Shown: positions 5,349 through 51,258 of the stretch, piece after piece | How positions within the stretch are numbered: position 1 is the first letter of the stretch | How the letters are laid out: each line of letters opens with the position of its first letter | Assembly (NCBI GenBank): GCA_035084275.1 | Contig: CM068771.1 | Span: 4,216,001 to 4,280,000 of the forward strand | Origin: Hydrolagus colliei | Taxonomy: Eukaryota | Length of the DNA stretch: 64,000 bases | Direction: 5' to 3' | The notes under the pieces: model-generated | What the model saw: the letters and a program-made list of their open reading frames with translations, nothing else | What the model was told of the DNA's origin: nothing | The model's database searches: none | Translations under genes and position numbers: made by a program

Positions 5349-5360
5349 GGTTTCACTTTC
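5349..5360. promoter_or_regulatory. IRF-binding element / ISRE GGTTTCACTTTC upstream of BTN (also 28547-28558 and 61627-61638)
   Basis: Reverse complement GAAAGTGAAACC matches the IRF1/2 consensus; identical in all three units. Confidence 0.65.
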
Positions 5361-5866
5361 GCACCCTGTGATGTTGAGTTTAACTGTGAAATAAATGTTC
5401 TCCATTGTCAGGTTTGTGTAAATAGTAAAGCGGGAGCGGCTGCTGTGAGTTTATTCCCAGTTTGTTGTTTAAACGCTGAGAATTGGAGGCCAGTGAGGAG
5501 TGAGGGGAATGGGAGCCTCGTCTCTGACCTGCACCTTGTTGGGGGTGAATAAGGAGCAGCTCTGAGGAGAGGGAGGGGAGGAGCACATAGAGCAGTCACA
5601 CACAACATGTTTCTTCCCCAAAACTACCTCATGGAGACCCCCCAGTGTGGGGCTGGGGGGGGCCTCACTGTCACAGTTAAACTTCCCAAATCATTATTCC
5701 GACAGAGATGGCAGTTTGTTCTGCTGTGTGTGTGTAAATGTTGTAAGATCGCAGAATTATTCATTAGGTTTTTTATTTTGACCAATTATGTACAAACACA
5801 AATCTCTGTAATTATCTGATTTGCTGTTGCAACCAGATGTGATCTCAATGTGAAGGCCCGAAGAAG

Positions 5867-5924
5867 ATGATCTGGAAACGCTGTATTCAGGTCCTGTGGC
5901 TTGTGCTCCCCCTCTCTCTGGCTG
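5867..5924 (+). CDS. BTN-A signal-peptide exon ([20 protein letters not shown])
   Basis: Hydrophobic leader ending GCT G|gtaagg; upstream acceptor caaccag at 5836; conserved in copies B and C. Confidence 0.8.
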
Positions 5925-8900
5925 GTAAGGAAACACGTTGAATCTGTTTGGTTTCTGCTGATGGTAAAGGGAGGACCTCTCCATTCTGGTTCGTGTCCAT
6001 AGGAAAGTGTAAAAGTTCCAAATGACATTTGTGTCTATTTGCGGCCAGGGCTCACTATGTCTCCTCATCCTTCTTGATCTTCCCACGGCCACTAACATGG
6101 TTGACCACTTTATCCTTCTCCACTCCCTTTCCTCTCAGCTCCACGTTCGTGGCTCTGTCCTTTCCTGGTTCTGTTCTTACCTTTCCCATCGTCTCCACTT
6201 TGTTTCCACCAATGACTTCTCCTGTATCCCACGCTCCATCACATGTGATGATATCCAGGGTTCTTTACCTGGTCCTACCCTTTTTAATATTTACATTCTC
6301 TCGCTTCCGGATGTGGGTGACAATCAACTCTGTCTCTCTGCCTATACCCCCAACTCCAGGAACAATGCTGTCCTGATAGATTGTCGGTCAGACAAGGCTT
6401 GGATGAGACCCAATTTCCTAACTATAAATGTACAAGACTAAGGCTCTCCATCACCATCCTTTCCTTCCATCAGCATCTCTGCACCCCGGGCACTGACGGC
6501 ATCAATATTCGTGGATGTACTCTCCACCACCAATACATAAGAACTTAAGTATTAGGCGCAGGACTAGGCCATTTGGCCCCTCAAGCCTGCCCCGCCATTC
6601 AATAATACCATGGCTGATCTTCAAATCTAACTCCACCTATGCGCCTCATTTCCATATCCCATAATCCCTTTGTCCAAAGAAATCTATCAATTTCAGTCTT
6701 GAATATGCTAAAGGATTGAACATCTACAGTTTTTTGGGTTAGAAAATTCCATAAATTCACTAGCCTCTGAGTGCAGAAGTTTTCCCTCAACTCATTGTGA
6801 AAAGGCTGACACCTATTCTTAAGACTATAACCCCAACCAGGATCACCAACCAGGGGAAACAGTCTCCCACTGTCTACTCTGTCATGGCCCTTAATAATCT
6901 TATAGGTTTCTTTCATGTCACCTCTCATTCTTCAAATGCAAGGATTATTATTATAGTTCAATTGCGGCTGCCAAAGGGAACTTCTACTTTATGTTAGTAT
7001 GTCACTAACTTTCTGTTGATAGTTATTCTGAGACAATGTGACTGAAAATCCTAACTATTGTCGATTGTTTGTTACTGAACAGAGAGATTCACAGTCAATG
7101 TTCCCAGTCACCCTGCCCTAGCCATTGCTGGTTCAGATGTTGTCCTGGACTGTAAGTGTTCCACAAAGCTGCCATTAGAGGGTGTGGAGGTGAGATGGTT
7201 CAGGGTGAGATTCGACTCCCCTGTGCACTTATTTAAAGAGGGACATCATCAACTGGATATACAGGATGAAGCCTATAGACACAGAACACAACTGTTTGAA
7301 GAGAAGTTTATCAATGGTGATGTGTCTCTCAGACTGGAAGATGTACGGGTGACAGATCATGGAGAGTACACATGTTTCGTCGAGTACGACGGATCGTATG
7401 AACAGGGAGTGATAGAGTTGAAAGTTATAGGTCAGTAATGTTTCCAATTCATTTTATTACATGTAATCTGTGTGTGCAAGAATTCACTCATCTTTAATAA
7501 GTTCAAAGTACAATAATTTCTATGAACAAGAATGTCCGTTTATTCAGAATGTTGTAGATGTGTTTTTGTTAAGTTACTGCACTGTAATGTCCCGGGTAAA
7601 ATATTGTCTGATTCATGTCTCCTGTCTCTTCCAGGCCTTGGCAGTCAGCCTTGGATTCATGTTGATGGACAACACAATGGTGGTGTGATGCTATTGTGTG
7701 AATCCAGTGGATGGTTCCCAGCACCAGAGGTTCTGTGGTTTGATGATCAGGGAAACAAATTATCAACACTCAGTAACTGGACAGTCAAACAGGATTCTAA
7801 AGGTCTCTTCAGTGTTCAAAGCCAAATAGAAATAATCCATTCAACCAACAAGATCAAGTGTCTGATTCATAATTCAGAAAATGAACAAGAAGGAAAACTC
7901 CAAATCTTGGGTTGGTAAACACAGTAAATATTAATGTTGGTCTGAAAAATATGATGTAGATTTATTATAATAATTCTTGCATTTGAAATAACACTTTTCA
8001 CGTTTTCTATGCATCTCAAATTGCTTCACAGAATATACTGTAAAATATATTGGCTGTGTATACATGGGCGAAACGTGGCAGAAAGTTGCGCACAGCAGTG
8101 TCCCTCAAACAGCTGTGTATTAAAATAACCAATTATTATTGTGTCTTTTTGAGGGACTATTATTAGCTGTGCAGAGTAAGGAAACTTGCCCAAAGTTTCA
8201 CCCCACCGGGAATCAAACTCACGTCTCGCGCTTGTCAGGGGAGTGCTCTAATCACTGAGCTACAGGACTCCATAAAGTATTGTACAGGACTTCACTTGAT
8301 GTGTTGTACAACACATGAAGTGAATACATATCGGTCTGGATGATACGGTCTATCTAATTTCATCCTTTCAAAATATGAAACTCGTAAGAATTAGGAGCAG
8401 GAGTAGGCCACTCGGTCGCTCGAGCCTGCCCCACCATTCAATAAGATCATGGCTGATCTATTCTAACTCCATCTACCCGCGTTATCCCCATATCCATTCA
8501 TCATCTCCTTTATCTCTCTATTATCCCTCTCATCATCTTTAATAACAACTATTTACATTTGTAAATTGCCTTTCACATCGAGACAACGTCCCAATGTGGA
8601 AGATGCTATAAAACGTCAAAGATTTGGTCATCAGCTGGGGGATAGGGTCAAGAAGGATGGAAGGCAGGTGGGTGGGAGTAGGTGGGTGACCGAATGTATG
8701 GTCAAAGTGGTGGGTGTTGAAGGTGAGAAGGGACAGCCCGAGGTGGAGGGACTGTGGATGGGGTTCCAAAAATACCTCCGTACTCCAGCCCACCCAACCT
8801 TCCTGTTAATTATTCAAGCTGCTTATTATGTTAGGAATGAATCAATACTGAATGTCAACGTGACTGAAGCTCTCCTGATTAGCTCCAGTCAGCGCCTTCA

Positions 8901-11900
8901 CATCTCAGGTACTGGCAGCATCAACAACAACAACAAATTACATTTATAGAGCGCCTTTCACGTCGGGAGGACGTCCCAAGGCGCTGAATGTACAACCTCC
9001 ATGGTTGTACATTCCATATCAACAAACCAGTCAGGAACCTAGATGTCTTGTTCTATCCTCAACTGTCTTTCCTCCCCCACTTACAAGCCGTGACTCATTC
9101 TGCCTTCAATCACCTCCGCAACATTGCCCAACTCCGCCACTAGGTCACCCCTCAGGCCGCTGAAACTGTATCCAATATGATACCAGGCTTCACTTTGATT
9201 GAAGCCTGTGGTAGCGACTGAGCTATTGTGTGTAATACAGTAACATGGGGGTAAATGTAGGCATTTAGTGTTTGATATCAGAATAGATGTTTGAATGTAT
9301 ATTTACATTTCTTGACAGATGAGTTCTTCCCCAAAGTGCCAGTGGGTTTGGTGGTCTCCTCACTGCTCTTAGGACTTGCCATAATAGTGCTGAGTGTTCT
9401 TGTCGTCTACAGTGTAAAACAGCACCGAGAGATCAAAGGTACGTTTCCGTCAGTAACATCCCTCAACTTAACACTGTGTTACTGTTTGTGTGAGAATATG
9501 CAAGTTCTATAAATCAATTGCTTTCTCCCTTCACTCAGTAACCACCTGGCCTGTTTCATGTCACTGCCCTATTCTTCCCCCCCATCAGCAAGTTAGGCTT
9601 TCAACCTATCTGTCCCCACTCTCTGGAACTCAATCCAACTGTCTTTTCGAATCAGTCTTTCCAAATCACTGCCACATCATCCCATTCTGAAAGATGCTCT
9701 ATAAATGTCATTTTGTTGTTGTTGTTTAATAGGCCCCCTCTCCCCACTCTCACTGACTCACTGGAGACAATAAAACAGCATCTTAGACTACCACAGCTTG
9801 GCTAAATTATTAATTATTGCAGTATTATCTCATCGCTCGCTCCTCTCTCCCTTCTCTCGTTGAACGCTCCACTCCACTCTTCTCTTATCACTCGCTCCAC
9901 TCTCCCTTCTCCGCCTAAGGGTGCATCGCGCGAGGGCGGTGAACTCCCATATGCAGACCAGCCAGCCAGCGCATATACGCACGTTATTCAATAAAGTCAC
10001 GCATTTTTTTCTTCGCGCATGTTTGAGTTCACAATTGAGAAAGATGCGATCGACGAGTGCCTACTGTAACTGAGTTGAGCTTTATTCTGTGTAGTTTATC
10101 GCTTGTTATTGTTGTAAACAGGTAGTTTGACCACTAAATAATACTGTATTCAATATTGGTTTCTAACAGTTTTGCTTTGTATCCTCCAGATCTTGAGAAG
10201 ACAGTTGGTAAGTCATCAAAGTAAAATAACAATCTCATATTATGATTACTCTCACTCACAAGGTTCACACAAATCAGACGTAAGGTGGTGTTACAACACT
10301 TCTGTTTGCCAACAAAAGGCAAAGTTGCTACACTCTCCTGTCAACCTGGGGAAATGCTCATGGGGAGCCAAATCAAATTCAAGGATTATTATTGTGGTAT
10401 AAGGTTAACTTGCAATTCTTTAGCGCTCTCCACGCAGGGTAGCATCTCAAAGCACTTAAGAATGGCGGAGCCTGACTGTGGTCTGGGGGGGAGGTTGGGC
10501 CGTAAGCATGTAGGAAAAGGAATGTTTTAAGGCAGGTCTTAAGGGGAGATGGGGAGAAAGGCAGAGGGATTGAAGGAGAGAATCCATTGTTTCGGGGGTC
10601 GGTCGCTGAATGTATAAAGGTGGAGAGGAGGGAAAGTTCGCTGGGAAGTTGACATGTATATGAGATACATGATAAGAGACTTGAAGGAGTATATGGATAG
10701 GGCAGAACAGCTGCTGTAAGAAAAGATTGCTTTAATAACTCTTGCAAACTAGATATTTCACATCATTAACTGTTCATTTTCTTCGCTTAGACAACAGTGG
10801 CTTGTCAATATACACACATTTCAGGGAGGGGGTGGGGTGGATAGAATGAGCAAGCTTGTCAGTAACACAGGGAGTGAGTCAATGATGGAGGGATGGAGGA
10901 AATGAAAGAAGAAGGTATTGAGAGAGAACAACAACAATATTGCACTTATATAGCGCTTTTCACGTCGGGAGGACGTCCCAAAGCGTCTCCCAAAACAAGG
11001 GAGTGATTTTGGAGCTACATAAGGTTTGATCACTTCTCTCTTGGTTCTAGGGTGGAAGAGGATTTGTAGGTGTGCAGGTAAGAGTCTAACTGCTAAAGGA
11101 ACCTGACTCCCCCCCAACGACCCCGCCACACACTCACATTCCCTCCCCACCCCCCACCCACCCCCCACACACATGGACTCAATCCCACCCACACACATAC
11201 TCCCGATGAGGGTGGTGTGGGGGTATGTGATGGTATCTCACACACCATCACATACCCCCACACCACTCACACACACTCACATCTCTCTCCCACACACACC
11301 ATCAAATCCCCCCGACACACACATCACCTCACACCACACCCCCCACACAACAACAAATATTACATTGATAGAGCGCCTTTCACATTGGGAAGATGTCCCA
11401 AGGCGCTGAACAGTCGGGTCAGGACCCGAGCAAGGGGGAGGGGCAAGGTGGGTGGGGGGAGGGGAGGGAGAGAGTTGGGAGGGCAGCTGAAGGCACTGAC
11501 CAAGAGGAGAGTCTTGAGACTGGCCTTGAAGGAGGTGAAGGGGAAGTGAGGTGAAGGGACTATGGGATGGAGTTTCAGAGTGTGGGGGCAGAGGCTGAAA
11601 GCCCGGCCACCAATGGGAGGGCAGATCAAGCGGAGAACATGGAGCAGCCTGCAGCCTGGGGTGGGCAGGTTGATAGGATGTCAGCCGGTCAGAGAGATAG
11701 GAGGGGGCAAGGTAGTGAAACGTCTTGAAAGTGAGGACAACCCCAAACACCCCCTCCCCACAATGCACATAACCTCACAAGCCTCCAACACAACTCTCCC
11801 TCCTCCCCCCGCCCCCCCCCCCCACACACACACACCCACAAACACCCTGGCATTCCCTCCCAACACACGCCCTCACATCTTCCCTCTGGCCCCCCCACCG

Positions 11901-13236
11901 CCGCACACATCCTCACTTCCCCTCACCTCCACACACCCTCATGTCTCCCCCCACAACACACATAGTCACATCTCCCGCACACACCCTCAAACAACACTCC
12001 TCACACAAACCTCCACATAACCCACAAACACCCTTACAGCTCTCCCCCACACACCTGCAAATTGCTCAGCCAAACACACCCTCATATTCCCCCCACCAAA
12101 CACACTCACACCCGAACCCTACACACCCTCAGTCACAACTCCCCCACCACACACATCCTTGCATTCCTCACCCACACATATCCCCCCATACACACCCTCA
12201 TATCGCCTCCACACACGTCAAACTCCACCCACTAAACCCTCACATAACCCTCACATCCCCCTCCACAAACACACCCTCATATTCCCCCTCCACACTGACA
12301 CACCCCAGTCCACACACATTCCCCCCTCCTCCTCCCCCCCAACACACACCCTCACATCCCATCACACACTCATCCCCAACACACACATTTCCCACCCCCA
12401 CACATGCTCATAATCCCCTCCAGACTTATATCATCCCCACACACCCTCACATCCCACCCCTCACACACACCCTCACAAACTCCCACCCCTCACACACATG
12501 CACATCACCCCCTCTTCCTCTCCCCTCCACACACACCCCCACATCACCCCCCCCCCCCCCCCCCCCCCCACACCCACAGACTCTGAGCCTATGTGTTGGA
12601 TTCTGTTCCCAGGAGATGTCAGTGTTTGACACAAAGGCTTCTCTCCCGAAGCTGAAGATCATCTTATTGATAATTGTCAATGTGTCCGACATTAATGGTC
12701 TGGTTCTCACTCTAGTTACAGTCACTCTGGATCCTGACACAGCCCATCCCTGGCTCATCCTGTCTGAGGACCTGACCAGTGTGAGAGATGGAGACACATG
12801 GCAGCCGCTCCCTGACACCCCAAAGAGGTTTAGTAAAGATCCCATTGTCCTGGGGTCTGAGGGCTTCACATCAGGGAGACATTACTGGGAGGTGCAGGTG
12901 GGGAACAAGACACAGTGCATTGTGGGATTGGCCAGAGAGTCTGTCAACAGGAAACAATGGATCACATGGTCACCAGAGGGCGGGGTCTGGGGGGTGGAGC
13001 TGTGGGGCGGGGCCTATGAGGCTCTGACGTCACCCCGCACCCCCCTGCCCCTGACAGTGAGACCCGGGAAGGTCGGAGTTCACCTGGACTATGAGGGGGG
13101 ACAGGTGTCAGTTTACGACGCTGATCACATGTCTCATCTCCACACCTTCACCCAAACTTTCACTGAGAAACTCTATCCTCTCTTCTATCCCGGGTTTGAT
13201 TCTGAGCCTCTGACAATCTGCCCAGTGACTGGTTAA
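5867..13236 (+). CDS. Butyrophilin-like protein, copy A (intact, ~455 aa). Exons 5867-5924, 7083-7430, 7635-7910, 9319-9438, 10190-10207, 11051-11077, 12716-13236
   Basis: All introns GT-AG and phase 1; exon lengths sum to 1368 nt with no internal stop; SP-IgV-IgC-TM-short exons-B30.2 is the canonical BTN/BTNL architecture. An additional mini-exon cannot be excluded. Confidence 0.88.
6536..6930 (-). mobile_element. Older CR1 3' fragment (paralog 34630-35025)
   Basis: Translation [18 protein letters not shown]...[11 protein letters not shown]...FKTEIDRFL is a CR1 ORF2 C-terminus followed by the shark-type 3' tail. Confidence 0.8.
7083..7430 (+). CDS. BTN-A IgV exon
   Basis: ERFTV...VVLDC...EVRWFR...[21 protein letters not shown]...; flanked by ag| and |gtcagt; 348 bp. 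Confidence 0.92.
7635..7910 (+). CDS. BTN-A IgC exon
   Basis: GLGSQPWIH...[16 protein letters not shown]...[10 protein letters not shown]...KCLIHN; ccag| and |gttggt; 276 bp. Confidence 0.92.
7965..8272 (-). mobile_element. tRNA-derived SINE in a BTN intron (paralog ~36060-36363); many further SINE/L2 3' fragments occur throughout the window
   Basis: Same head and tail motifs as the other SINE copies. Confidence 0.6.
8385..8500 (-). mobile_element. CR1/HE1-type 3' tail fragment (paralog ~36473-36590)
   Basis: taagaattaggagcaggagtaggcc...ccattcaataagatcatggctgatc motif typical of chondrichthyan CR1/HE1 ends. Confidence 0.65.
9319..9438 (+). CDS. BTN-A transmembrane exon
   Basis: [40 protein letters not shown]; gacag| and |gtacgt. 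Confidence 0.88.
10190..10207 (+). CDS. BTN-A 18-bp juxtamembrane mini-exon (DLEKTV)
   Basis: Pyrimidine tract + cctccag| and |gtaagt; phase-1 frame preserved; conserved in B (DLEKTI). Confidence 0.7.
11051..11077 (+). CDS. BTN-A 27-bp mini-exon (GWKRICRCA) preceding B30.2
   Basis: ttggttctag| and |gtaaga; resembles the W-R/K-R-containing 27-bp exon typical of butyrophilins; identical in B. Confidence 0.78.
11740..12575. repeat. C/A-rich low-complexity intron tract before the B30.2 exon; expanded in B (39990-41235) with ~24-bp (CACACACACCCTCACATCCCCCTA)n units
   Basis: Visible low complexity; the apparent ORFs over it are P/H/T-rich artefacts. Confidence 0.85.
12716..13236 (+). CDS. BTN-A B30.2 (PRY-SPRY) terminal exon
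   Basis: [12 protein letters not shown]...[18 protein letters not shown]...[16 protein letters not shown]...KLYPLF; acceptor tctag at 12715; stop TAA 13234-13236. Confidence 0.93.
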
Positions 13237-14247
13237 TCAGGAGGAAAACGCTGAGACATTGACTAGGTTCACAGGTTGGTGGAGTGGGGCTGGGGTGGGG
13301 GGGGAGGGGGTTGAGTGGCCACTTTAAGATGAGAGTTGGCTTTGGGTCAGTATCAATGGGGGGGGGGGGGGGGCTTGTCCATCGCCTTGGCAACCAACCG
13401 CTGACAGGGTGTGAGAGCGGCAAGAGGGCCCCATGTGTTGCGGTTGCTGGGAGGACTGACTGAGGTCCTCCTCATGGCTTTCCCTCCCATCTCTCATTAA
13501 ATGGTGAGGGGGCGGGGGGAGATAGGGACTGAGCCCCCACCAGCCCTCACCACCCACCGTCTATTTGACTGTTGTAACCGCGAGGTTTGGATGGAGCCGA
13601 GTGTTTGATTCTGGGCTTTTCCCCCAGTTTTGAGCTGAGTCTGAGACAGGAATCAATTACAATGAAAACTTCATCACCAGCTGGTCTCTGGGCTTGTGCT
13701 GAGAGAATCTGAGCTTCCATCAGTGTGTGAGCTCACACGGTCTGAGACAGGGATATCGGCTGATATCTTCCTCTTCAGCAATGCCCAGTCTCACAGTCGG
13801 GGGCTGGGCTCAGAATCTCACTGAAATCTCCCAAATCACTTTAGTGTCTATAAACAAGGTGACACATTCTACTCTAGCGTCAGCCTCGTCTCACTGTGTA
13901 TAAACAATGTGTAATGTGTATTTTCAGTGACTACTTTTATAATCTGTGTAACATTTCTCATTCACTGTAACAATCACTCAAGACCTTTAACCCTCATTAA
14001 ATCAATGTCCCGTTGTCTAGTCAAGTTGATATTATTACAGAAAATATTGTCATTGATTTGCAAAATACAAGAGCAATTAACAATAAATCATGTTATGTCA
14101 TTATTTTATGCCCAATGATTATACACACTCTACACACTCTCCTCGCCCTCCCCCTCCCTCTCCCATCCCCACCACCCCCGAAACACTCAGACACTGATAC
14201 ACACACCACTGACCATCAACCCCTGATACAAGAACACAAACAAGTTA

Positions 14248-14771
14248 CAGGTAGACCCCACTTAACGTCGCCTCGGTTAACGTACTTTCGTTATTACATT
14301 GCTGATACATTGGAAACACACAAATATCCCTCCCCGACCGTGGAGGATACGTTCCTGAATCCCCCGCCCCCCCCCCCCAAGTGATTAGTAAAACCATGGT
14401 TGGCAAATACAAGGCCAACCGCGTGTCTGGTTGATGTAACTGGGTCATCGCACCAAACTCTAGTGTTAGTGTTGAAACCCATGGATGCGCAAAATTCACT
14501 GCCGCGGTTGGCAAAGGTTGTCGCAGAGAGGAAACCACGGATACGGAGTGGGCAGCGAGAGAGATCATCAGTGAGTGAGTGAGCCAGGAAGGCAGTCAGG
14601 GAGTGAGTGTAATGGGTTTGTTTTTGGAAATTTTTGACGAAAAATGTCCAAAATAACCTAAATCCAGTTTTAACATTCATTCTTATGGGAAACATGTAAT
14701 CACTTAACGTTGTTTCGCTTAAAGTCGCACTTTTCAAGAACCAAACTACGATGTTAAGCGGGGTCTACCTG
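14248..14771. mobile_element. Tigger/pogo-type MITE with TA TSD, unit A
   Basis: TA|CAGGTAGACCCCACTTAACGTCG ... CGATGTTAAGCGGGGTCTACCTG|TA. Confidence 0.9.
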
Positions 14772-16203
14772 TACATTTTCACAGCATCTTTCATGTCAGG
14801 AGGACGTCCCTAGGCGCTGACAATCAGGGATCCCCACCTGATCTGGTGTTTGGGATCAGGAGGGGTGGAGGACAGGGAGGGGAGGGTAAGAGGTTTACCA
14901 ATGGCACGGTTGAATAGGGGGGTCTTCAGATGCGGCTTGAAGGAAGCAATGGAGGGCGTGAGGTGGAGAGACTGAGGGTGCGTGCAGAGAGGTTGATAGT
15001 TCACCTGCCAATGAGAGGGCGGAGCAGTTGATCGAGTTGTTATTACTGTATCATTGTCTTCAAGCTACTTGTGCACTTCTTATGAAGCTTTGCCTGATTT
15101 TCTGCTGTTTCCCACCCTTTTCCCCAAAAATGTCAGTTCACATTACAAACCGTTTGATTTGTATTTCTAACTAACCCCAGCACTTTCCGGAAGTTTATTT
15201 GATGTTTTAAGCTTTTTTCCAGCACTTTCTAGAAGTTGATCACCAGTAGGCACCTTCACGTGAACGTTTGGCTAATTTCCATCTGCACTTCCATCTTGAA
15301 ACATCCGTTGATTTGTATAAATTTCACACATGTTCACATTGAAATAATAATAACTTCACATTAACTTACGTTCAACGTCAAGGTGTTTTGAACAATTTTA
15401 ATGAAGATTTGGCTGATTTCCAGCTGTGTCTTAAAACGTTCCCAAAATTTCAACAAATATTCAGAACAATTTGATCTGAATTTCCAGTTTATTAGAGCAC
15501 TTTCCAGGAGTTTCAGCGAATTTTCAGCTGTTTTTCCAGCACTTTCTAGAAGTTACAGTAGTCATCAGTAGTGCCCAGCCCACTTTCATGTGAACTTTTG
15601 GCTCATTTCCAGCTGCATATTTTTTAAATATGTGTTGATTTCCATCAATTTAGCACATTTCAATTCACTTTACAGTATATTCTGTGAAGCGCTTTGTTAC
15701 GTCGATAAGACATGAAAAAGCGCTGTATCAAATGCAAGGATTATTATTATTATTTTTATATTAAACTTACATTCGACTTCAAGATGTTTGTTACCCATTT
15801 ATATTACCCATTTCTGACACATAATGAATATCTGTCTGATTTCCGAAAGTGTCTTAACACTTTCTTCAAGTTTCAACAAAAGTTCCAAGCAATTTCCCTC
15901 TTTTCCCCCCTTTCTCCCTTGACCCCACTTCCGTGACTGTTTATCGGACGCTGCCGTGCGCAGTTTGGCTGCCACGTTTCGCCCACAAATATAGTCAATT
16001 CTCCTCTCCTTCATCCTACCCCAACCCCTCCCCCCCTTCTCTTGTCCCTACCTGACTGTACAGCGCCTTGGGATGTCCTCTCAATGTGAAAGGCGCCACG
16101 TAAATGTAAGTTTTGATTGATAGATTGATTGTTTGTTTGATTGATTGATTGATTGATTGATGGATCAATCAATCAATCGAATGAATGAATGAATGTCCAA
16201 TGG

Positions 16204-16227
16204 TTTCCAGAACTTTCTAGAAGCTTT
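16204..16227. promoter_or_regulatory. Perfect heat-shock element TTCcaGAActTTCtaGAA (copy B 44864-44887)
   Basis: Four contiguous inverted nGAAn units; further HSEs at ~16647-16671 and ~16688. Confidence 0.8.
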
Positions 16228-16969
16228 AACACATTTTCAGCTGTTTTTCCAGCACTTTCTAGAAGTTACAGTAGTCACCAGTAGTGCCCAGCCCACTTTC
16301 ACGTGAACTTTTGGCTCATTTCCAGCTGTACATTCTTGAAATATCTGCTGATTTCCATTAATTTAGCACATTTCAATTCACTTTACAGTACATTCTGTGA
16401 AGCGCTTTGTGACGTCGATAAGACGTGAAAAAGCACCAGATCAAATGCGAGGATTATTATTATTATTTTCATATTAAGATAATAATTACAACTTCACGCA
16501 AACTTACATTCAACTTCAAGATGTTTTTGACACATTTACACATTTACATTGCACATAATGAATCTCTGGCTGATTTCCCAAAGTGTCTTAACTCTTTCCC
16601 CAGTTTCAGCAAAAGTTCCAAGCAATTGTATCTGAACGCCCGATGGTTTCCAGAACTCTCCGGAAGCTTTCGCACACATCCAGCACTTTCCAGAAGCTAC
16701 TGGCCGCGCCTGGTAATTTCGCATGAACCTCTGGCACGTGGCCAGCTGATCGTTCTGGAAGTTTAACCCGATTCCCGTTGATCCCGGACGTCTCCGCACA
16801 ATCACAACAACAACAATAATAATAATTCCACACGAATTCGCGGTTGATTCCGGCTGTTTTTCCCGCTAATTTTCAGCAGATTGCCAGCAGTTTGGAGGCA
16901 TTGTTTTTTTACTGAAGTTTGGGGCAGATTTTCAGGTGTTTGAGCCCCTTTTCCCTGTTGACCCCCACA

Positions 16970-17103
16970 GGTCTGAGCCCCTCCCCCAGGTCTGAGCCCC
17001 TCCCCCAGGTCTGAGCCCCTCCCCCAGATCTGAGCCCCTCCCCCAGGTCTGAGCCCCTCCCCCAGGTCTGAGCCCCTCCCCCAGATCTGAGCCCCTCCCC
17101 CAG
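16970..17103. repeat. 19-bp minisatellite (GGTCTGAGCCCCTCCCCCA)~7 upstream of HSP70-A; ~9 units in B (45627-45799)
   Basis: Visible tandem units; copy number differs between copies. Confidence 0.9.
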
Positions 17104-41000: not shown

Positions 41001-41813
41001 TCACCCCCAACACAAACATTTCCCACCCCCACACATGCTCATAATCCCCTCCAGCCTTACATCATCCCCACACACCCTCACATCCCACCCCTCACACACA
41101 CCCTCACATCCCACCCCTCACACACATGCACATCACCCCCTCTTCCTCTCCCCTCCACACACCCCCCCCACATCACCGCCCTCCTCGTCCCCCCCCCCCC
41201 CCCCACATCACCCCCCCCCCCCCCCCCCCACCCACAGACTCTGAGCCTTTGTGTTGGATTCTGTTCCCAGGAGATGTCAGTGTTTGACACAAAGGCTTCT
41301 CTCCCGAAGCTGAAGATCATCTTATTTATAATTGTCAATGTGTCCGACATTAATGGTCTGGTTCTCACTCTAGTTACAGTCACTCTGGATCCTGACACAG
41401 CCCATCCCCGGCTCATCCTGTCTGAGGCCCAGACCAGTGTGAGATACGGAGACACATGGCAGCCGCTCCCTGACACCCCAAAGAGGTTTAGTGTCTATGC
41501 CATTGTCCTGGGGTCTGAGGGCTTCACATCAGGGAGACATTACTGGGAGGTGCAGGTGGGGAACAAGACAAGGTGGATTGTGGGATTGGCCAGAGAGTCT
41601 GTCAACAGGAAACAACCGATCACATGGTCACCAGGGGGCGGGGTCTGGGGGGTGGAGCTGGGGGGCGGGGCCTATGAGGCTCTGACGTCACCCCCCACCC
41701 CCCTGCCCCTGACAGTGAGACCCGGGAAGGTCGGAGTTCACCTGGACTATGAGGGGGGACAGGTGTCAGTTTACGACGCTGATCACATGTCTCATCTCCA
41801 CACCTTCACCTAA
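29067..41813 (+). CDS. Butyrophilin-like protein, copy B, C-terminally truncated (~428 aa). Exons 29067-29124, 35178-35525, 35730-36005, 37383-37502, 38239-38256, 39308-39334, 41374-41813 (ancestral stop at 41892-41894)
   Basis: Same exon lengths and splice sites as copy A; CAA->TAA at 41811 removes the last 27 aa of B30.2; the intron between SP and IgV exons carries CR1 and hAT-like insertions. May be a pseudogene. Confidence 0.82.
29163..31519 (-). mobile_element. Young 5'-truncated CR1 LINE with an uninterrupted ORF2 fragment (C-terminal endonuclease region + RT), present only in unit B
   Basis: ORF 29252-31609 contains [31 protein letters not shown] and FADD; (ATTCTATG)n 3' tail at 29163; absent at the matching site 5962 in unit A; ~3-bp target deletion, no TSD. 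Confidence 0.95.
31899..34533 (+). mobile_element. Non-autonomous hAT-like DNA transposon (2.6 kb), unit B; replaces ~90 bp of flank, no TSD
   Basis: TIRs CAAGGCCGTACGCAGG ... CCTGCGTACGGCCCTG; absent in unit A at 6345-6430; carries a DeuSINE and an RTE fragment. Confidence 0.9.
32600..32997 (-). mobile_element. tRNA-derived DeuSINE (SacSINE1/AmnSINE1-like) carried inside the hAT-like element (also 54563-54960 and ~59083-59480, + strand)
   Basis: A/B-box head (TGGCACAGTGAATAG, GGTTCAAACCC), Deu-like core ggatcttttcacatccatc...gacctcggttcagcatctc, L2-like tail. Confidence 0.7.
35178..35525 (+). CDS. BTN-B IgV exon
   Basis: 348-bp paralog of 7083-7430, open frame. Confidence 0.9.
35730..36005 (+). 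CDS. BTN-B IgC exon
   Basis: 276-bp paralog of 7635-7910, open frame. Confidence 0.9.
37383..37502 (+). CDS. BTN-B transmembrane exon
   Basis: Same translation as copy A TM exon. Confidence 0.87.
39054..39253 (+). mobile_element. 200-bp 3' fragment of the same young CR1 family, unit B only
   Basis: Nearly identical to the 3' end of the 29163 element, ends attctatgattct; unit A has the empty site caaaac|aagggag at 10996. Confidence 0.92.
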
Positions 41814-41894
41814 ACTTTCACTGAGAGACTCTATCCTCTCTTCTATCCCGGGTTTGATTCTGAGCCTCTGACAATCTGCCCAGTGACTGGTTAA
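41374..41894 (+). CDS. BTN-B B30.2 exon with premature stop at 41811-41813
   Basis: acc taa act in B versus acc caa act in A; the downstream frame still encodes [26 protein letters not shown]. Confidence 0.9.
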
Positions 41895-43427: not shown

Positions 43428-45789
43428 TACATTTTCACAGCATCTTTCATGTCAGGAGGACGTCCCTAGGCGCTGACAATCAGGGATCCCCACCTGATCT
43501 GGTGTTTGGGATCAGGAGGGGTGGAGGACAGGGAGGGGAGGGTAAGAGGTTTACCAATGGCACGGTTGAATAGGGGGGTCTTCAGATGCGGCTTGAAGGA
43601 AGCAATGGAGGGCGTGAGGTGGAGAGACTGAGGGTGCGTGCAGAGAGGTTGATAGTTCACCTGCCAATGAGAGGGCGGAGCAGTTGATCGAGTTGTTATT
43701 ACTGTATCATTGTCTTCAAGCTACTTGTGCACTTCTTATGAAGCTTTGCCTGATTTTCTGCTGTTTCCCACCCTTTTCCCCCCAAATGTCAGTTCACATT
43801 ACAAACCGTTTGATTTGTATTTCTAACTAACCCCAGCACTTTCCGGAAGTTTATTTGATGTTTTAAGCTTTTTTCCAGCACTTTCTAGAAGTTGATCACC
43901 AGTAGGCACCTTCACGTGAACGTTTGGCTAATTTCCATCTGCACTTCCATCTTGAAACATCCGTTGATTTGTATAAATTTCACACATGTTCACATTGAAA
44001 TAATAATAACTTCACATTAACTTACGTTCAACGTCAAGGTGTTTTGAACAATTTTAATGAAGATTTGGCTGATTTCCAGCTGTGTCTTAAAACGTTCCCA
44101 AAATTTCAACAAATATTCAGAACAATTTGATCTGAATTTCCAGTTTATTAGAGCACTTTCCAGGAGTTTCAGCGAATTTTCAGCTGTTTTTCCAGCACTT
44201 TCTAGAAGTTACAGTAGTCATCAGTAGTGCCCAGCCCACTTTCATGTGAACTTTTGGCTCATTTCCAGCTGCATATTTTTTAAATATGTGTTGATTTCCA
44301 TCAATTTAGCACATTTCAATTCACTTTACAGTATATTCTGTGAAGCGCTTTGTTACGTCGATAAGACATGAAAAAGCGCTGTATCAAATGCAAGGATTAT
44401 TATTATTATTTTTATATTAAACTTACATTCGACTTCAAGATGTTTGTTACCCATTTATATTACCCATTTCTGACACATAATGAATATCTGTCTGATTTCC
44501 GAAAGTGTCTTAACACTTTCTTCAAGTTTCAACAAAAGTTCCAAGCAATTTCCCTCTTTTCCCCCCTTTCTCCCTTGACCCCACTTCCGTGACTGTTTAT
44601 CGGACGCTGCCGTGCGCAGTTTGGCTGCCACGTTTCGCCCACAAATATAGTCAATTCTCCTCTCCTTCATCCTACCCCAACCCCTCCCCCCCTTCTCTTG
44701 TCCCTACCTGACTGTACAGCGCCTTGGGATGTCCTCTCAATGTGAAAGGCGCCACGTAAATGTAAGTTTTGATTGATAGATTGATTGTTTGTTTGATTGA
44801 TTGATTGATTGATTGATGGATCAATCAATCGAATGAATGAATGAATGAATGAATGTCCAATGGTTTCCAGAACTTTCTAGAAGCTTTAACACATTTTCAG
44901 CTGTTTTTCCAGCACTTTCTAGAAGTTACAGTAGTCACCAGTAGTGCCCAGCCCACTTTCACGTGAACTTTTGGCTCATTTCCAGCTGTACATTCTTGAA
45001 ATATCTGCTGATTTCCATTAATTTAGCACATTTCAATTCACTTTACAGTACATTCTGTGAAGCGCTTTGTGACGTCGATAAGACGTGAAAAAGCACCAGA
45101 TCAAATGCGAGGATTATTATTATTATTTTCATATTAAGATAATAATTACAACTTCACGCAAACTTACATTCAACTTCAAGATGTTTTTGACACATTTACA
45201 CATTTACATTGCACATAATGAATCTCTGGCTGATTTCCCAAAGTGTCTTAACTCTTTCCCCAGTTTCAGCAAAAGTTCCAAGCAATTGTATCTGAACGCC
45301 CGATGGTTTCCAGAACTCTCCGGAAGCTTTCGCACACATCCAGCACTTTCCAGAAGCTACCGGCCGCGCCTGGTAATTTCGCATGAACCTCTGGCACGTG
45401 GCCAGCTGATCGTTCTGGAAGTTTAACCCGATTCCCGTTGATCCCGGACGTCTCTGCACAATCACAACAACAATAATAATAATTCCACACGAATTCGCGG
45501 TTGATTCCGGCTGTTTTTCCCGCTAATTTTCAGCAGATTGCCAGCAGTTTGGAGGCATTGTTTTTTTACTGAAGTTTGGGGCAGATTTTCAGGTGTTTGA
45601 GCCCCTTTTCCCTGTTGACCCCCACAGGTCTGAGCCCCTCCCCCAGGTCTGAGCCCCTCCCCCAGGTCTGAGCCCCTCCCCCAGATCTGAGCCCCTCCCC
45701 CAGGTCTGAGCCCCTCCCCCAGGTCTGAGCCCCTCCCCCAGGTCTGAGCCCCTCCCCCAGGTCTGAGCCCCTCCCCCAGGTCTGAGCCC

Positions 45790-46070
45790 CGCCCCCAGGT
45801 CAGATCTCCCAGAGCTGGGAATGAAGTTCCTCTGATTTCCAGCTGTTTCTGGACTGGGTTCCTTCCTGAAGTCTCCACAACGTTCCACGCGCTCCGATTG
45901 GCCGCCGACCAGGAAGCGGCCGGGGGCGTCCTCTTTGTGACATCACCTTGACGCCCTCTGATTGGCCCCCCTCCACCCCCCCCCCCCCCCCCCCGAGGCC
46001 GCCAGGCCCCGCCCACAACCAAGAAACCAGCCTTTATATACAGGGCGAGGAGTGAAGCCAGGCTCAGACA
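45790..46070 (+). promoter_or_regulatory. HSP70-B core promoter
   Basis: Near-identical to 17110-17370. Confidence 0.75.
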
Positions 46071-46505
46071 CTGAGACAGACTGAGAGTCAGACTGACACT
46101 GAGACAGACTGACACTGAGACAGACTGACACTGAGACAGACTGACACTGAGACAGACTGACACTGAGACAGGCTGACACTGAGACAGACTGACACTGAGA
46201 CAGACTGACACTGAGACAGACTGACACTGAGACAGACTGACACTGAGACAGACTGACACTGAGACAGACTGACACTGAGACAGACTGACGCTGAGAGGGG
46301 CTGAGAGACTGAAAGCCTGAGAAACAAGAAGGGAGAGCGAGAGAAAGAAGAGAGAGAGCGAAGGACGGAGCTACAAGAAGAAGACATAAAGAGGAAAACA
46401 CCTTCGCGGCGACTTCAGTCCAAGACTCACTGACATTGGGACAGCGATTCGGAGCCAAAGGATCTAAGTCACGTACAGACGCGCTCACGTACAGACGGCA
46501 GGACA

Positions 46506-48410
46506 ATGGCCCCAGCGATTGGCATCGACCTGGGCACCACCTACTCGTGTGTGGGTGTGTTCCAGCACGGCAAGGTGGAGATCATCGCCAACGACCAGGG
46601 CAACCGCACCACACCCAGCTACGTGGCCTTCAACGACACCGAGAGGCTGATCGGCGAAGCCGCCAAGAACCAAGCAGCCCTCAACCCCCCCAACACCGTC
46701 TTCGATGCCAAGAGGCTGATCGGGAGGAAGTTCGATGACCCTGTGGTGCAGGCGGACATGAAGCACTGGCCTTTCCAGGTGGTGAGCCAGGGGGGCAAGC
46801 CCAAGGTGCAGGTTGAGTACAAGGGAGAGTCCAAGACGTTCAACCCCGAAGAGATCTCGTCCATGGTTCTGACCAAGATGAAGGAGATCGCCGAGGCTTA
46901 TCTGGGCTCCAGAGTCACCAACGCTGTCATCACGGTGCCCGCTTACTTCAACGACTCCCAGCGCCAGGCCACCAAAGACGCCGGGATGATCGCGGGGCTC
47001 AACGTCCTTCGCATCATTAATGAGCCCACGGCAGCTGCCATCGCCTACGGTCTGGACAAGAAGGGCCAGGGGGAGAAGAACGTCCTGATCTTTGACCTGG
47101 GTGGAGGCACCTTCGACGTGTCCATCCTCGCCATCGACGGCGGGATCTTTGAGGTCAAATCCACAGCCGGTGACACCCACCTGGGGGGCGAGGACTTTGA
47201 CAGCCGTATGGTCGACCACTTCATCCAGGAGTTCAAGAGGAAAAACAAGAGGGACATCAGCCAGAACAAGAGAGCAGTCAGGAGGCTGAGGACAGCCTGC
47301 GAGAGAGCAAAGAGGACTCTGTCTTCAAGCACCCAAGCCAGCATTGAGATCGACTCACTGTTTGAGGGAATTGACTTCTACACCTCCATCACCAGGGCAC
47401 GGTTTGAGGAGCTCAATGGAGACCTGTTCAGAGGAACCCTGGAGCCAGTGGAGAAAGCGTTGACAGACGCCAAGCTGGACAAGTCTCAGATCCACGAAGT
47501 TGTCCTCGTCGGTGGCTCCACTCGCATCCCGAAGATCCAGAAGCTTCTACAGGATTTCTTCAACGGCCGAGAGCTGAACAAGAGCATCAACCCGGATGAG
47601 GCAGTGGCCTACGGGGCAGCTGTGCAAGCCGCCATCTTGATGGGCGACAAGTCTGAGAATGTGCAGGATCTGCTCCTGCTGGACGTGACTCCTCTGTCCC
47701 TGGGTCTGGAGACAGCGGGAGGCGTCATGACCTCCCTCATCAAGAGAAACTCAACCATACCCTCCAAACAGACCCAGGTCTTCACCACCTACTCCGACAA
47801 CCAGTCCGGTGTCTTGGTGCAAGTCTACGAGGGCGAGAGAGCCATGACCAAGGACAACAACCTCCTGGGCAAGTTTGAGCTGAGTGGAATCCCCCCGGCT
47901 CCCCGCGGGGTCCCGCAGATCCAGGTTACCTTCGACATCGATGCCAACGGCATCCTTAGTGTCTCGGCCGCTGACAAGAGCACTGGTAATGAGAACAAGA
48001 TCACCATCACCAACGAGAAGGGCCGGCTGAGCAAGGAGGAGATCGAGAGGATGGTGCAGGAGGCTGAGAGGTACAAGGCGGATGATGAGACGCAGCGGGA
48101 GAGGGTGATGGCCAAGAACAAGCTGGAGTCGTTCGTCTACACAGCCAAATGTGCGATGGAGGACAAGAGCATGGAGGGCAAGGTGGGAGAGGAGGACAGG
48201 CGGCAGGTGCTGGACAAGTGCAAACAGGTCATCAACTGGCTGGATGGAAACCAGACAGCGGAGAAGGAAGAGTTTGAGCACCAGCTGAAGGAGCTGGAGA
48301 GGGTGTGCAGTCCTGTCATGGCCAGGCTGAGGCAGGGAGGGGCAGAGGGCGGTCAGCGATCAGGCAAGAGCTGCCCATCTACCGGCCCAACCGTGGAGGA
48401 AGTCGATTAA
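46506..48410 (+). CDS. hsp70: Intronless inducible-type cytosolic HSP70, copy B (634 aa, ends GPTVEEVD)
   Basis: Full HSP70 signatures, single exon, cytosolic EEVD terminus, HSE/TATA promoter. Confidence 0.97.
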
Positions 48411-49863
48411 ACGTCAGCCGATGGACTTCCTGCCCCTTTGGCTTTTCTGTACCTGCTCAGGTGTTAATCTTTCCCACCTTCAGACACTTTGGGATATATG
48501 TATAAATGATAAACGTATAGGGCTATGGGTTAAGAGTAAGGGTGTGGGACTGATTGGGTAGATCTTTCAAACAGCCAGCGCAGATACAATGGGCCTAATG
48601 GTCTACTTATTTGCGGTAAGATTGAATGATTCTATGTATATTTTGAACTAATGATCTGCTATGAATGTATGTCACAGCGACAGCAGCTGGACTCCGAATT
48701 TTATTTTATTAAACTGTTTGTACCCGATGTACTTCTGTGTGTGTGTGTGTGTGTGTGTGAGATTCATACTGGCTCAAACACTGGGGCCCTCAACTCTGAG
48801 TCAGAAGGTTGTGGGTGGAAGCCACACACTGGGCCGTGGAACCACAGTCTACCATGACACTTGAATGCAGGCGCTGGGTGGGGAGGGGGAGGGGGAGGGT
48901 GGAGGGTTTGCGACATCGTCAGAACTGGCATCCTTCAAACAAAACATTAAAGTGAGCTCCTGTCAGCGCAGTGTTTCACAAACAGTTGTGGATTTCGTGA
49001 GCAAATGTTATTATTGTTAAGGGATTGTGACCCCAGTAAAGTGATCGGAAATCGCCCTAGAACTGTGGTCCTTTTCCCTGCAGGATAAACAGAGGCGTGT
49101 GGAATGGCGGTGTTGATGGGGAAACTTCACCCTATTATTCACAGTAAAACATCAATAATAATCCTGACGTTTGAGAAGCGCCTTTCGTGTCAGGTGGACA
49201 TCTCAAAGAGCTTCACAGGTTACACCATAAACATAAGAGCTGAGAACTTCCAGAACATTATTAAACAGTAAAATTCACATCAGTATTATTGCTAACACAC
49301 CTGGACCCGAGTAAATTTACCTTTCCCTCGTGTCTCCCGATGTAGTTAAGTTAGAGGGCGATATCAGAAACAGAATCATTTACTGAGGGTTAAATTGACC
49401 GGCTGGGTGGATACAATGGACGCCGGTTAAATCGGACACGAAAGAGCCGAGCATTTAATCTGAAATAAGCAGCTTCTGAGGCTGACCGCTATCGATGTAT
49501 TAAATCTCATCCTTTGTTTTAACCCAATTACTGACAACATAGTAACGCCAATTACTACAACATATAGCGCCTCTGACGTCAGGAGGAAGTCCCGAGGCAC
49601 TGTCACCAATTGCTGATGTGTAAAGCCCTGAACACAATGCTCACTGTCATTTACAAACTAAGAAGGTGATTGATACCTTGATAAATAGTGTTCACAGAAA
49701 ACGGGTAAAAAAAGAAGTGACAGAAACTTAAACTTTTTTATTGAAAAGTTCTCTCAAGTCGGACTGTACGAGATCAGCGTGGCGTCGCTCTCTGATGCTC
49801 GCAACGATGTCGTTAAGTGCGTTCGAAAACTTGTTGTAGAGTCCGCTCTTTAGTAAGAAGCGT

Positions 49864-51258
49864 TCAGCCTCTCGCAGGCCAGTCAGAGCTGTGCTGGCTG
49901 TCACAGGCGAGGCCCCCATTGTCCTCAGAGTCGCTGTCGCTGCTGTTCTCGACTAGTAGGCGCTCGGCGGCACCAGCTTCGGCCACGATATTCTCCTGAC
50001 CTTGCGGATCACGGCAAGGTAGATCAGAGTCAATGTCCAGGAACTGGTCAGCGATCTGCCTCTCGCCCTCGGCCTCTGTGCTTGTCTTCTCGTCAGCCTC
50101 AGCACGGGGAGCAGCGTCACCAGACGCAAACCCTGCCTTTGCGAAGCAATTGGATATCATCGCAGGCTCCATGCTCTCCCAGGCCCTGGCAGCCATGCCG
50201 ATGGCATCCAGCAGGCTGATGTGTCTGGCCATCTTTCCCACCGAGGCCTGGGGGCTGATGGTGTTGCTGTCAATGGCGTCGAGGAGGCGATTCCGTAGCT
50301 CCTCGCGGTAGGAAAACTTCAGGTGTCGGATGATTCCTTGACCCATGGGTTGGATCATGGTGGTGTCCGGGGGAATCAGCTCCAGGCAGATGTTCTTAAG
50401 CATTGGGACGGTCAGATGACACGGTGCGCTGTCCATGAGAAGAAGAATTTTACGCCCCAGGTTGACCAGCTCTGTGTCCCACTGCACCAGCCACTCCTTA
50501 AATATCGTTCCTGTCATCCACGCCATTTTGTTGGCCTTATAGGTGACAGGCAGAACGGCGCAGTCGACTCCCTGCATACAGCGAGGGCGCTGGCTCTTCC
50601 CGATGACCAGCAGTTTGCGCCGGTCGCAGCCGGTCATGTTGGCGCAGACCATCAGCGTGACACTGTCCGTCGCTCCCTTTACACCACTCGGCTCAGTCGG
50701 GTGCAAATACGAGCCGTTGGGCACCGCGCGATAGCGCAGCCACGTTTCCTCCGCGTTGTAGATGGCATCTGGGGCATAGGAAGAGAGCAGCACGGTGCGG
50801 GAGTTAGCGCCCTCTAGGCCAGCGCTCCTCAGCTCTCCGGGAAACAGCCTGTACACTATGTTGTTACGTGCCTTCCAGCGGCTAAACCAGCCGTCGGTCA
50901 CGGTGAACCCCGGCTTCCCGAGCTCGTGCGCCAGGCTCTGCGCCTTGGCTTTGAGGATGGGCCCATTGAGCGGCTGCCCCTCGGTGGACGCCCTTTGGAA
51001 CCACAGGAGGAGAGCGAGCTCCACCTGGGGATCTTTGCCTTTGCGATCCCTCTTCTTACGCAGACCCACGTCGCCCTCGGCCAAGGTGGCCGCTGTCCGG
51101 CGCAGCTTCGTCTCACTGGCGACGAGGTCACCCAGCGTCGACTTCTTGACCCCGAGCCTCCTGGCCAGTTCTCGCAGGGGAGTCCCCCGCGGCTCCAACT
51201 TGACCCTGTCTAACACTTCTATCTTCTCCAAAAGTGTCCGGGACATTTTCTTCGACAT
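49864..51258 (-). CDS. TIGD-like pogo-derived protein, copy B (464 aa). A +1 C near 49913-49917 shifts out the ancestral last 61 aa (ancestral ORF ~509 aa ending at 49728)
   Basis: MSKKMSRTLLEKIEVL...GVKKSTL; ALLLWF...PLNGPILKAKA...GWFSRWKARNNI; YNAEET, LLLMDSAPCH and QPMGQGII correspond to pogo DDD motifs with D1->E and D3->G; no TIRs found. Confidence 0.85.
   Translation of the reverse strand: MSKKMSRTLLEKIEVLDRVKLEPRGTPLRELARRLGVKKSTLGDLVASETKLRRTAATLAEGDVGLRKKRDRKGKDPQVELALLLWFQRASTEGQPLNGPILKAKAQSLAHELGKPGFTVTDGWFSRWKARNNIVYRLFPGELRSAGLEGANSRTVLLSSYAPDAIYNAEETWLRYRAVPNGSYLHPTEPSGVKGATDSVTLMVCANMTGCDRRKLLVIGKSQRPRCMQGVDCAVLPVTYKANKMAWMTGTIFKEWLVQWDTELVNLGRKILLLMDSAPCHLTVPMLKNICLELIPPDTTMIQPMGQGIIRHLKFSYREELRNRLLDAIDSNTISPQASVGKMARHISLLDAIGMAARAWESMEPAMISNCFAKAGFASGDAAPRAEADEKTSTEAEGERQIADQFLDIDSDLPCRDPQGQENIVAEAGAAERLLVENSSDSDSEDNGGLACDSQHSSDWPARG

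Follow-up and report, generated by a model that had tools for sequence, protein, structure and literature searches.

Tandem copies of a butyrophilin, HSP70 and pogo-derived gene neighbourhood in the holocephalan Hydrolagus colliei

A 64-kb stretch of the genome of the holocephalan Hydrolagus colliei (GenBank assembly GCA_035084275.1, contig CM068771.1, positions 4,216,001 to 4,280,000 of the forward strand; hereafter the window, with position 1 at its first letter) contains a head-to-tail repeat of three neighbouring genes: a butyrophilin (BTN) and an HSP70 gene on the plus strand, followed by a pogo-derived TIGD gene on the minus strand. Two full units and the start of a third were recognized by self-BLAST and windowed identity. 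The same trio occurs at least twice in full in Callorhinchus milii, where it lies inside a large BTN cluster. The window is quite probably a slice of a holocephalan BTN multigene cluster, whose copies would have arisen by unequal crossover or conversion between BTN genes, with HSP70 and TIGD as passengers.

An earlier reading made from the letters alone (the sequence-only reading) had described a BTN-HSP70-TIGD unit present twice in full with part of a third, which is borne out by self-BLAST, the windowed identity and the gene models. The window holds a tandem segmental duplication of at least two colinear units of high identity, arranged head to tail, and within the limits of a single assembly this repeat structure is real (Table 1). 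The third unit matches unit 1 with 99.1% identity at 51394-52802 (against 1-1409) and with 98.8% at 60187-61957 (against 3910-5681). Since the window starts 136 bp beyond the expected start codon of a preceding TIGD, the array probably extends upstream. Three insertions found in unit 2 only make it 6 kb longer than unit 1. The unit lengths (about 23-29 kb) are those of the assembly, in which runs of N interrupt every spacer, so that spacer and unit lengths are nominal.

The identity between units 1 and 2 is not uniform. In 500-bp windows, 13600-22713 and 1-5962 are 99.2-100% identical (one window: 97.6%), and the BTN body (6457-13600, introns included) is 95-97% identical (one window: 99.2%). 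All three transposable-element (TE) insertions specific to unit 2 fall in the BTN body. The young or homogenized tract runs from just 3' of the BTN stop codon (~13600) via HSP70, TIGD, the spacer and the next promoter and leader exon to intron 1 (~5962). Because this tract begins and ends inside BTN genes, the mosaic fits an unequal crossover between diverged neighbouring BTN paralogues.

The passengers and one of the BTN genes carry lesions. In unit 1 the BTN is intact, the HSP70 contains a nonsense codon and the TIGD a frameshift; in unit 2 the HSP70 is intact, the BTN contains a nonsense codon and the TIGD is again frameshifted. Neither of the two full units retains three intact genes. The TGA at 19671 strips the last 17 residues, including the EEVD motif, from the unit 1 HSP70, while the TAA at codon 429 cuts off the final 26 SPRY residues of the unit 2 BTN. 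The 1-bp insertion in the unit 2 TIGD shifts the frame at the cost of the conserved final ~63 residues. The 10-bp slippage deletion of the unit 1 TIGD is unlikely to be a sequencing error, and we infer that the lesions are real and not errors of assembly. A complementary decay was likewise found in Callorhinchus, where locus L001 combines an intact HSP70 with a truncated TIGD, and locus L002 an intact TIGD with a frameshifted HSP70.

Four Callorhinchus loci on scaffold MU249860.1 were compared and examined for TIGD and HSP70 (L001, L002, L005 and L006, but not L004 and L007). Three Callorhinchus units are colinear with the window in coding as well as non-coding DNA, with introns and intergenic DNA aligning at 70-85%. 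L001 and L002 lie 113 kb apart and are 97.6% identical over 9 kb, and the scaffold holds at least eight BTN1A1-like genes. A synteny check in relatives thus found the arrangement present, not absent, in Callorhinchus (L001 and L002). Shared by the window and Callorhinchus, the BTN-HSP70-TIGD module is, on this comparison, old. The shark Heptranchias has two HSP70 genes in tandem beside a TRIM gene (RING, B-box, B30.2), and no TIGD was found within 10 kb of them. A TRIM gene (RING, B-box, PRY/SPRY) also follows the trio in L001 (16530-21743). Its B30.2 exon is 80.6% identical in nucleotides to the B30.2 exon of the window BTN, which suggests that TRIM and BTN genes of the cluster recently shared this exon.

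The BTN gene was modelled with the closest Callorhinchus protein (BTN1A1-like P0149, 453 aa) as guide. The unit 1 product is 76% identical to P0149, which has the same two short exons, and the shark BTNs listed are ~40-45% identical. The Pfam domains comprise V-set (E = 8e-11), C2-set_3 (a BTN3A2-like immunoglobulin C-type domain, IgC; E = 7e-23), PRY and SPRY, the B30.2 (PRY/SPRY) part matching with E = 1e-24 and 7e-21 (the latter for SPRY). A leader peptide and a single transmembrane (TM) exon are present, and paired cysteines are seen in the immunoglobulin V-type (IgV) and IgC domains. The best matches among solved structures are BTN3A3, BTN2A1, BTN3A1 and BTNL8/3. Judged by its signal peptide, IgV, IgC, TM and B30.2 segments and its complete spliced open reading frame (ORF), this is a true butyrophilin-type gene. 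A previous model, in which the TM exon was joined straight to an acceptor at ~12640, was replaced when the alignment with P0149 gave the two short exons and the acceptor at 12716. The last BTN intron contains CA/CCC-rich low-complexity arrays (11100-12700 and 40300-41250) that create long spurious proline/histidine/threonine ORFs; the array is larger in unit 2 (27-mer, 18.8 copies, 40499-40991). A 431-aa ORF at 11941-13236, in which the CA-rich intron is read into the B30.2 exon, was rejected as an artefact.

The BTN products of units 1 and 2 differ at 31 of the 455 residues and by the stop codon. Their dN/dS (the ratio of nonsynonymous to synonymous substitution rates) is 1.56, which is not significantly different from 1 (p = 0.26), so that the copies show no constraint against each other. 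Positive selection is not claimed on this value; diversifying selection on the BTN copies is possible.

The sequence-only reading had placed an interferon-stimulated response element (ISRE) upstream of the BTN, and the motif GAAAGTGAAAC was indeed found in all three BTN promoters of the window. It lies ~510 bp upstream of the BTN start codon in units 1 and 2 and ~1.9 kb upstream in unit 3, the greater distance being due to an additional insertion. This 11-mer is expected 1.4 times per 64 kb by chance. The three ISREs belong to repeats of a single segment and were therefore scored as one independent occurrence. The motif gains weight from its conservation across species: three BTN promoters of Callorhinchus carry the identical 11-mer at the corresponding place. 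The block of 150 bp around it has 89% identity between the species, compared to 70% in the adjacent 120 columns and 79% over the whole 960-bp promoter alignment. With such a conserved promoter, the BTN is probably responsive to IRF/ISGF3.

The HSP70 gene is a single uninterrupted ORF in both units. The protein matches the HSP70 family of Pfam over residues 4-609 (E about 1e-260), and its top solved-structure match is HSPA1A, tied with HSPA2. The unit 2 protein is 94% identical to Callorhinchus XP_007909996 and 82-84% identical to every shark and ray HSP70. In the phylogenetic tree it is sister to the protein of Callorhinchus milii (support 100/100) within a chondrichthyan HSP70 clade (96/88), which the tree joins firmly to neither HSPA1 nor HSPA2. 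Together with the alignable non-coding DNA, this placement agrees with the cartilaginous-fish setting that had been proposed for the stretch. The stem branch of the holocephalan pair (46506-48410 and Callorhinchus P0041) measures 0.19 substitutions per site and is several times longer than neighbouring chondrichthyan HSP70 branches. This points to an accelerated evolution of the HSP70 protein in the holocephalan lineage.

Heat-shock elements (HSEs) had been reported at this intronless gene, and dense arrays of them precede both copies. The window has 57 HSE trimers with at most one mismatch. All but 7 of them fall in the ~2.7 kb upstream of an HSP70 start codon, which makes 50 in total and 25 per unit. 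These upstream sites are carried by a ~710-bp module in three tandem repeats of 83% identity (15180-16770 and 43836-45430), situated 0.65-2.2 kb upstream of HSP70. Such a multiplied distal HSE enhancer is unusual compared to the proximal HSEs of the shark Heptranchias genes, at 240-330 bp. In Callorhinchus L001, 12 of the 19 HSE trimer sites fall in the equivalent region, and the overall arrangement is the same. The HSE array is separated from the CCAAT boxes by a 19-mer minisatellite (16964-17106 with 7.5 copies; 45621-45801 with 9.5 copies), and a 16-mer minisatellite occupies part of the presumed 5' untranslated region (5'UTR; 17369-17610 with 15.6 copies; 46067-46296 with 14.6 copies). The combination of HSE array, CCAAT boxes and TATA box suggests that the HSP70 gene is probably responsive to HSF1.

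The TIGD product matches DDE_1 (E = 1e-37) and HTH_Tnp_Tc5 (E = 8e-15) of Pfam, with CENP-B_N just under the cutoff. It is 79-80% identical to its Callorhinchus counterpart, followed by coelacanth proteins at 57-61%. Relatives are named 'TIGD4-like' and 'TIGD6-like' by NCBI and UniProt, and no mammalian TIGD is among the matches. Its promoter is GC-rich. Frameshifts affect both window copies, but an intact one may lie beyond the window; Callorhinchus has an intact 510-aa copy, and the Callorhinchus protein is also listed under the separate submitter accession AFK11349.1, which we take to be a cDNA-derived record.

The gene could be regarded as a dead pogo/Tigger transposon copy that landed beside HSP70 and was duplicated along with it. 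The frameshifts in both window copies would agree with this, as would the truncation or frameshift of two of the three Callorhinchus copies and the coelacanth relatives, which are multicopy and keep the catalytic D-D-D triad (as do invertebrate relatives). In both holocephalans, however, the triad has changed to E-D-G by identical substitutions, and the gene occupies the same position beside HSP70/BTN, colinear in three Callorhinchus loci. This orthologous position has been kept at a synonymous divergence (dS) of 0.29, which is alike to the 0.30 of HSP70, and the dN/dS between the species is 0.35-0.40 (Fisher p = 1e-10 against neutrality). Moreover, a search of 19700-24500 for pogo terminal inverted repeats (TIRs) gave only weak inverted pairs, with no TIR and no target-site duplication (TSD). 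The longest pair (42 nt, 76% complementary) was rejected as a TIR, as it consists of two oppositely oriented copies of a short interspersed element (SINE). In the TIGD tree, longer branches lead to the pseudogene copies, and a very short one to the intact 510-aa copy of Callorhinchus when set against its two dead paralogues. A mere dead transposon is therefore highly improbable. On this evidence, TIGD is a real domesticated, catalytically dead pogo-type host gene in this lineage, and the earlier label of a domesticated pogo gene holds.

As the TIGD copies cluster by species in the tree, their amplification was either independent or homogenized within each lineage. A survey of pogo domestication reports for cartilaginous fish only pseudogenes of JRK, TIGD5, TIGD7 and POGZ, and places the origin of TIGD3/4 in lobe-finned fish and that of TIGD6 in therians (PMC7386202). 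Because the survey has only those pseudogenes in cartilaginous fish, and TIGD3/4 from lobe-finned fish onwards, the holocephalan TIGD is probably a separate, undescribed domestication of a pogo transposase.

Table 1. Coordinates of the features in the window and of the compared Callorhinchus milii loci
Feature	Position	Strand	Evidence or remark
Repeat unit 1: spacer, BTN, HSP70, TIGD	~1-22713	.	self-BLAST, identity profile
Repeat unit 2, 28.7 kb	22714-51393	.	self-BLAST, identity profile
Partial repeat unit 3: spacer with additional repeat insertions, BTN promoter, leader exon	51394-64000, runs past window end	.	self-BLAST
BTN unit 1, intact 455-aa ORF, 7 exons	5867-13236	+	AG/GT at every junction
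BTN unit 1 exon 1, leader	5867-5924	+	
BTN unit 1 exon 2, IgV	7083-7430	+	
BTN unit 1 exon 3, IgC	7635-7910	+	
BTN unit 1 exon 4, TM	9319-9438	+	
BTN unit 1 exon 5, short	10190-10207	+	
BTN unit 1 exon 6, short	11051-11077	+	
BTN unit 1 exon 7, B30.2	12716-13236	+	
BTN unit 2, same 7 exons	29067-41894	+	CAA to TAA at 41811-41813 (codon 429)
BTN unit 3 leader exon, more divergent; remaining gene beyond window	63549-63606	+	153 bp at 92.8% identity to unit 1
ISRE GAAAGTGAAAC	5350-5360, 28548-28558, 61628-61638	-	motif search
HSP70 unit 1, intronless, 617 aa	17820-19673	+	CGA to TGA at 19671
HSP70 unit 2, intronless, intact, 634 aa, EEVD end	46506-48410	+	ORF list, Pfam
Array of 25 HSE trimers upstream of HSP70 unit 1	15180-17180	.	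at most 1 mismatch
HSE array copy, unit 2	43836-45875	.	
Perfect four-pentamer HSE	16205-16222 (unit 1), 44865-44882 (unit 2)		
Proximal HSE, single, imperfect, unit 1	17168-17180		
HSP70 core promoter, unit 1	17202-17343	+	read from sequence
Inverted CCAAT boxes	17202-17206, 17266-17270		
GC box	near 17309		
TATATA	17338-17343		
TIGD unit 1, frameshifted	21059-22578	-	10-bp deletion between GCCGGTC direct repeats ~21948
TIGD unit 2	49720-51258, ORF 49864-51258 (464 aa)	-	C4 to C5 homopolymer insertion at 49913
Long interspersed element (LINE) insertion, unit 2 only, BTN intron 1	29162-31516; intact 785-aa reverse-transcriptase ORF 29252-31609	-	self-BLAST, ORF list, Pfam
200-bp 3' tail, same LINE family, unit 2 only, BTN intron 5 just upstream of exon 6	39054-39254		
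2.6-kb non-coding repeat, insertion specific to unit 2	31899-34533	+	self-BLAST
N-run cluster, unit 2 spacer	25442-26873	.	(ACACACACACTGAC)n minisatellite
Equivalent N-run clusters	2597-3681 (unit 1); 52803-52947 and 56262-56922 (unit 3)		
Callorhinchus L001	2.10 Mb, MU249860.1		BTN, intact HSP70, TIGD without first ~200 codons
Callorhinchus L002	2.22 Mb, MU249860.1	inverted vs L001	intact 510-aa TIGD, HSP70 with frameshifts, BTN
Callorhinchus L005	0.74 Mb, MU249860.1		BTN and frameshifted TIGD, without HSP70
Callorhinchus L006	MU249860.1		BTN-BTN only, without HSP70 and TIGD

The following course of events would account for the window. An old three-gene neighbourhood, composed of a BTN1A1-like gene, an intronless HSP70 of the inducible type and a convergent, catalytically dead pogo-derived TIGD, now stands in at least three head-to-tail copies. 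Adjacent BTN paralogues would have exchanged sequence in recent times, by unequal crossover or by gene conversion, and so have made or homogenized the present copies; HSP70, TIGD, the spacer and the promoter of the following BTN would have travelled along as passengers. Some of the BTNs and the redundant passengers would now be in decay. What selection appears to maintain is at least one functional copy of every gene in a cluster, and not a functional trio in each unit. Each gene would be under its own control elements, namely the ISRE for BTN, the HSE/CCAAT/TATA elements for HSP70 and the GC-rich promoter for TIGD.

Several points weigh against this passenger model. The mosaic could equally stem from an array-wide homogenization in which the BTN bodies are kept apart by diversifying selection. 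The homopolymer change in the unit 2 TIGD could be a sequencing error and the two nonsense codons are single-base calls, while an HSP70 without EEVD or a BTN without its last 26 residues might still function. In addition, the copy number stands on one assembly, and the pattern of about one unit per gap-free stretch is also produced by retained haplotigs. All N runs sit in the TIGD-to-BTN spacer, inside a (ACACACACACTGAC)n minisatellite, at the same relative position in every unit; none lies in a gene. The units might accordingly be allelic haplotypes, or a collapsed or expanded repeat, wrongly joined in tandem across the minisatellite gaps, with a true unit number of one or a different one. 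The 0.5% background divergence falls within the range of heterozygosity, and the more divergent BTN body could represent an MHC-like (major histocompatibility complex) allelic polymorphism. Yet the spacer, promoter and leader exon exist in three distinct copies (at 5867, 29067 and 63549), which is more than the two haplotypes of a diploid, and these copies are told apart by substitutions, TE insertions and the number of minisatellite repeats. The independent assembly of another species, Callorhinchus, holds several units as well. The flanks of the 25442-26873 gap are colinear with unit 1 at 99.4% (22714-25287 vs 1-2583; 26878-29162 vs 3682-5962), and, because the N runs recur at the same relative place in every unit, the order of the flanks across the gap is supported in three instances. 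No gene or real reading frame spans an N run; long ORFs across N runs were rejected as artefacts of X translation. An assembly artefact is, on balance, unlikely.

The sequence-only reading had favoured an infection- and fever-responsive cassette amplified as a unit, with HSP70 and TIGD as passengers of BTN-BTN unequal crossover given as the alternative. In the former case the co-amplification itself would be selected, for dosage or for a coordinated display of BTN and HSP70 to gamma-delta T cells. It would explain why the three genes travel together in two species, why the ISRE and HSE arrays are conserved and why HSP70 neighbours a B30.2-domain gene in a shark too (TRIM-HSP70-HSP70 in Heptranchias). 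Against it stands the finding that the trio is intact in none of the window's units, while Callorhinchus units lack HSP70 or TIGD or carry their pseudogenes. Furthermore, each gene has separate regulatory elements of another kind, without any sign of a shared control, and TIGD is not known to act in immunity or stress. The cassette was thus not borne out and is rather improbable, whereas the alternative is supported by the identity mosaic, the lesions and the unit content in Callorhinchus.

In mammals, HSPA1A and HSPA1B lie in MHC class III, and the human BTN cluster is located in the extended MHC. The BTN-HSP70 adjacency and the TRIM-HSP70 adjacency of the shark might be seen as the remnant of a primordial stress-sensing neighbourhood that later became MHC class III/BTNL2, with the holocephalan-specific, catalytically dead pogo transposase recruited as a DNA-binding factor that regulates the cluster or promotes its recombination. 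If this very unlikely scenario were true, the trio would be functionally coupled, and the dead copies would reflect turnover in a birth-and-death array.

Compared to known BTN/BTNL clusters, the window shows the same signal peptide, IgV, IgC, TM, short heptad exons and B30.2, and growth by segmental duplication; in Callorhinchus, many tandem paralogues stand on a single scaffold (MU249860.1). The window differs in that the duplicated block regularly carries two unrelated passengers, HSP70 and TIGD. No MHC gene was found in the window or in the ~20-33 kb Callorhinchus loci, and the butyrophilins of Callorhinchus are reported to lie on a different chromosome from MHC class I (PMC12841164). The HSP70 gene shares with the inducible intronless genes (HSPA1A/HSPA1B and the tandem pairs of fish and sharks) the intronless ORF, the EEVD end (unit 2), the HSEs with CCAAT and TATA boxes, and a duplication like that of HSPA1A/B and the Heptranchias pair. 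In contrast to these, its HSEs reside in the threefold distal ~710-bp module with one imperfect proximal site, minisatellites occupy the promoter and 5'UTR, the holocephalan stem branch is long and one copy is devoid of EEVD.

The TIGD gene resembles the domesticated pogo genes (TIGD2-7, JRK, JRKL, CENPB, POGK and POGZ; Gao et al. 2020, PMC7386202) in its CENP-B_N/HTH_Tnp_Tc5/DDE_1 composition, its length of ~510 aa, its degraded triad, the purifying selection and the stationary syntenic locus without TIRs. However, it has so far been found only in holocephalans, its 57-61% identical coelacanth relatives keep D-D-D, and it is multicopy through segmental duplication with most copies dead. With segmental-duplication arrays in which non-allelic homologous recombination and concerted evolution have been at work (such as KIR/LILR and the MHC class I duplication blocks), the window shares large units of high identity, mosaic tracts, passengers, pseudogenes and a variable content. 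Nothing unusual was detected in the window in this regard, the gene content being the sole new feature.

Apart from the three genes, the units contain several repeats. The LINE family of the insertions at 29162-31516 and 39054-39254 seems to have been recently active. Copies of the 2.6-kb repeat that are ~98% alike occupy differing places in units 2 and 3 (31899-34533, plus strand; 53033-55660 and 58554-60186, minus strand; 57851-58557). In this repeat no ORF of more than 100 aa, no terminal inverted repeats and no long terminal repeat were found, and it was left unclassified. A 216-aa ORF is kept on the minus strand of all three spacers (4398-5048, 27595-28245 and 60675-61325); it has no Pfam match and presumably resembles the N-terminal part of retroelement polyproteins. 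One SINE family, which we take to be of the Deu-core type, is present in many copies (778-1131, 3766-4090, 7964-8272, 15660-15754, 16373-16467, 61956-62249 and 63716-63899). It is common to all Callorhinchus loci and accounts for most short cross-matches inside the window.

The conserved BTN-HSP70-TIGD neighbourhood and the holocephalan pogo domestication are new, although the novelty is modest and current MHC or HSP70 biology is not changed. No description of a BTN-HSP70-TIGD unit was found in the open-access literature, which is weak evidence in itself. If the passenger model is correct, the window offers a clean example of birth-and-death evolution, in the form of a butyrophilin expansion by unequal crossover that drags unrelated genes along, with a complementary decay of the passengers in two species. 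The TIGD gene would add a pogo-transposase domestication in chimaeras that is missing from a systematic survey of vertebrate TIGD genes. Finally, the conserved ISRE-bearing block of the BTN promoter may serve as a handle for testing whether interferon controls butyrophilins in the oldest lineage of jawed vertebrates.

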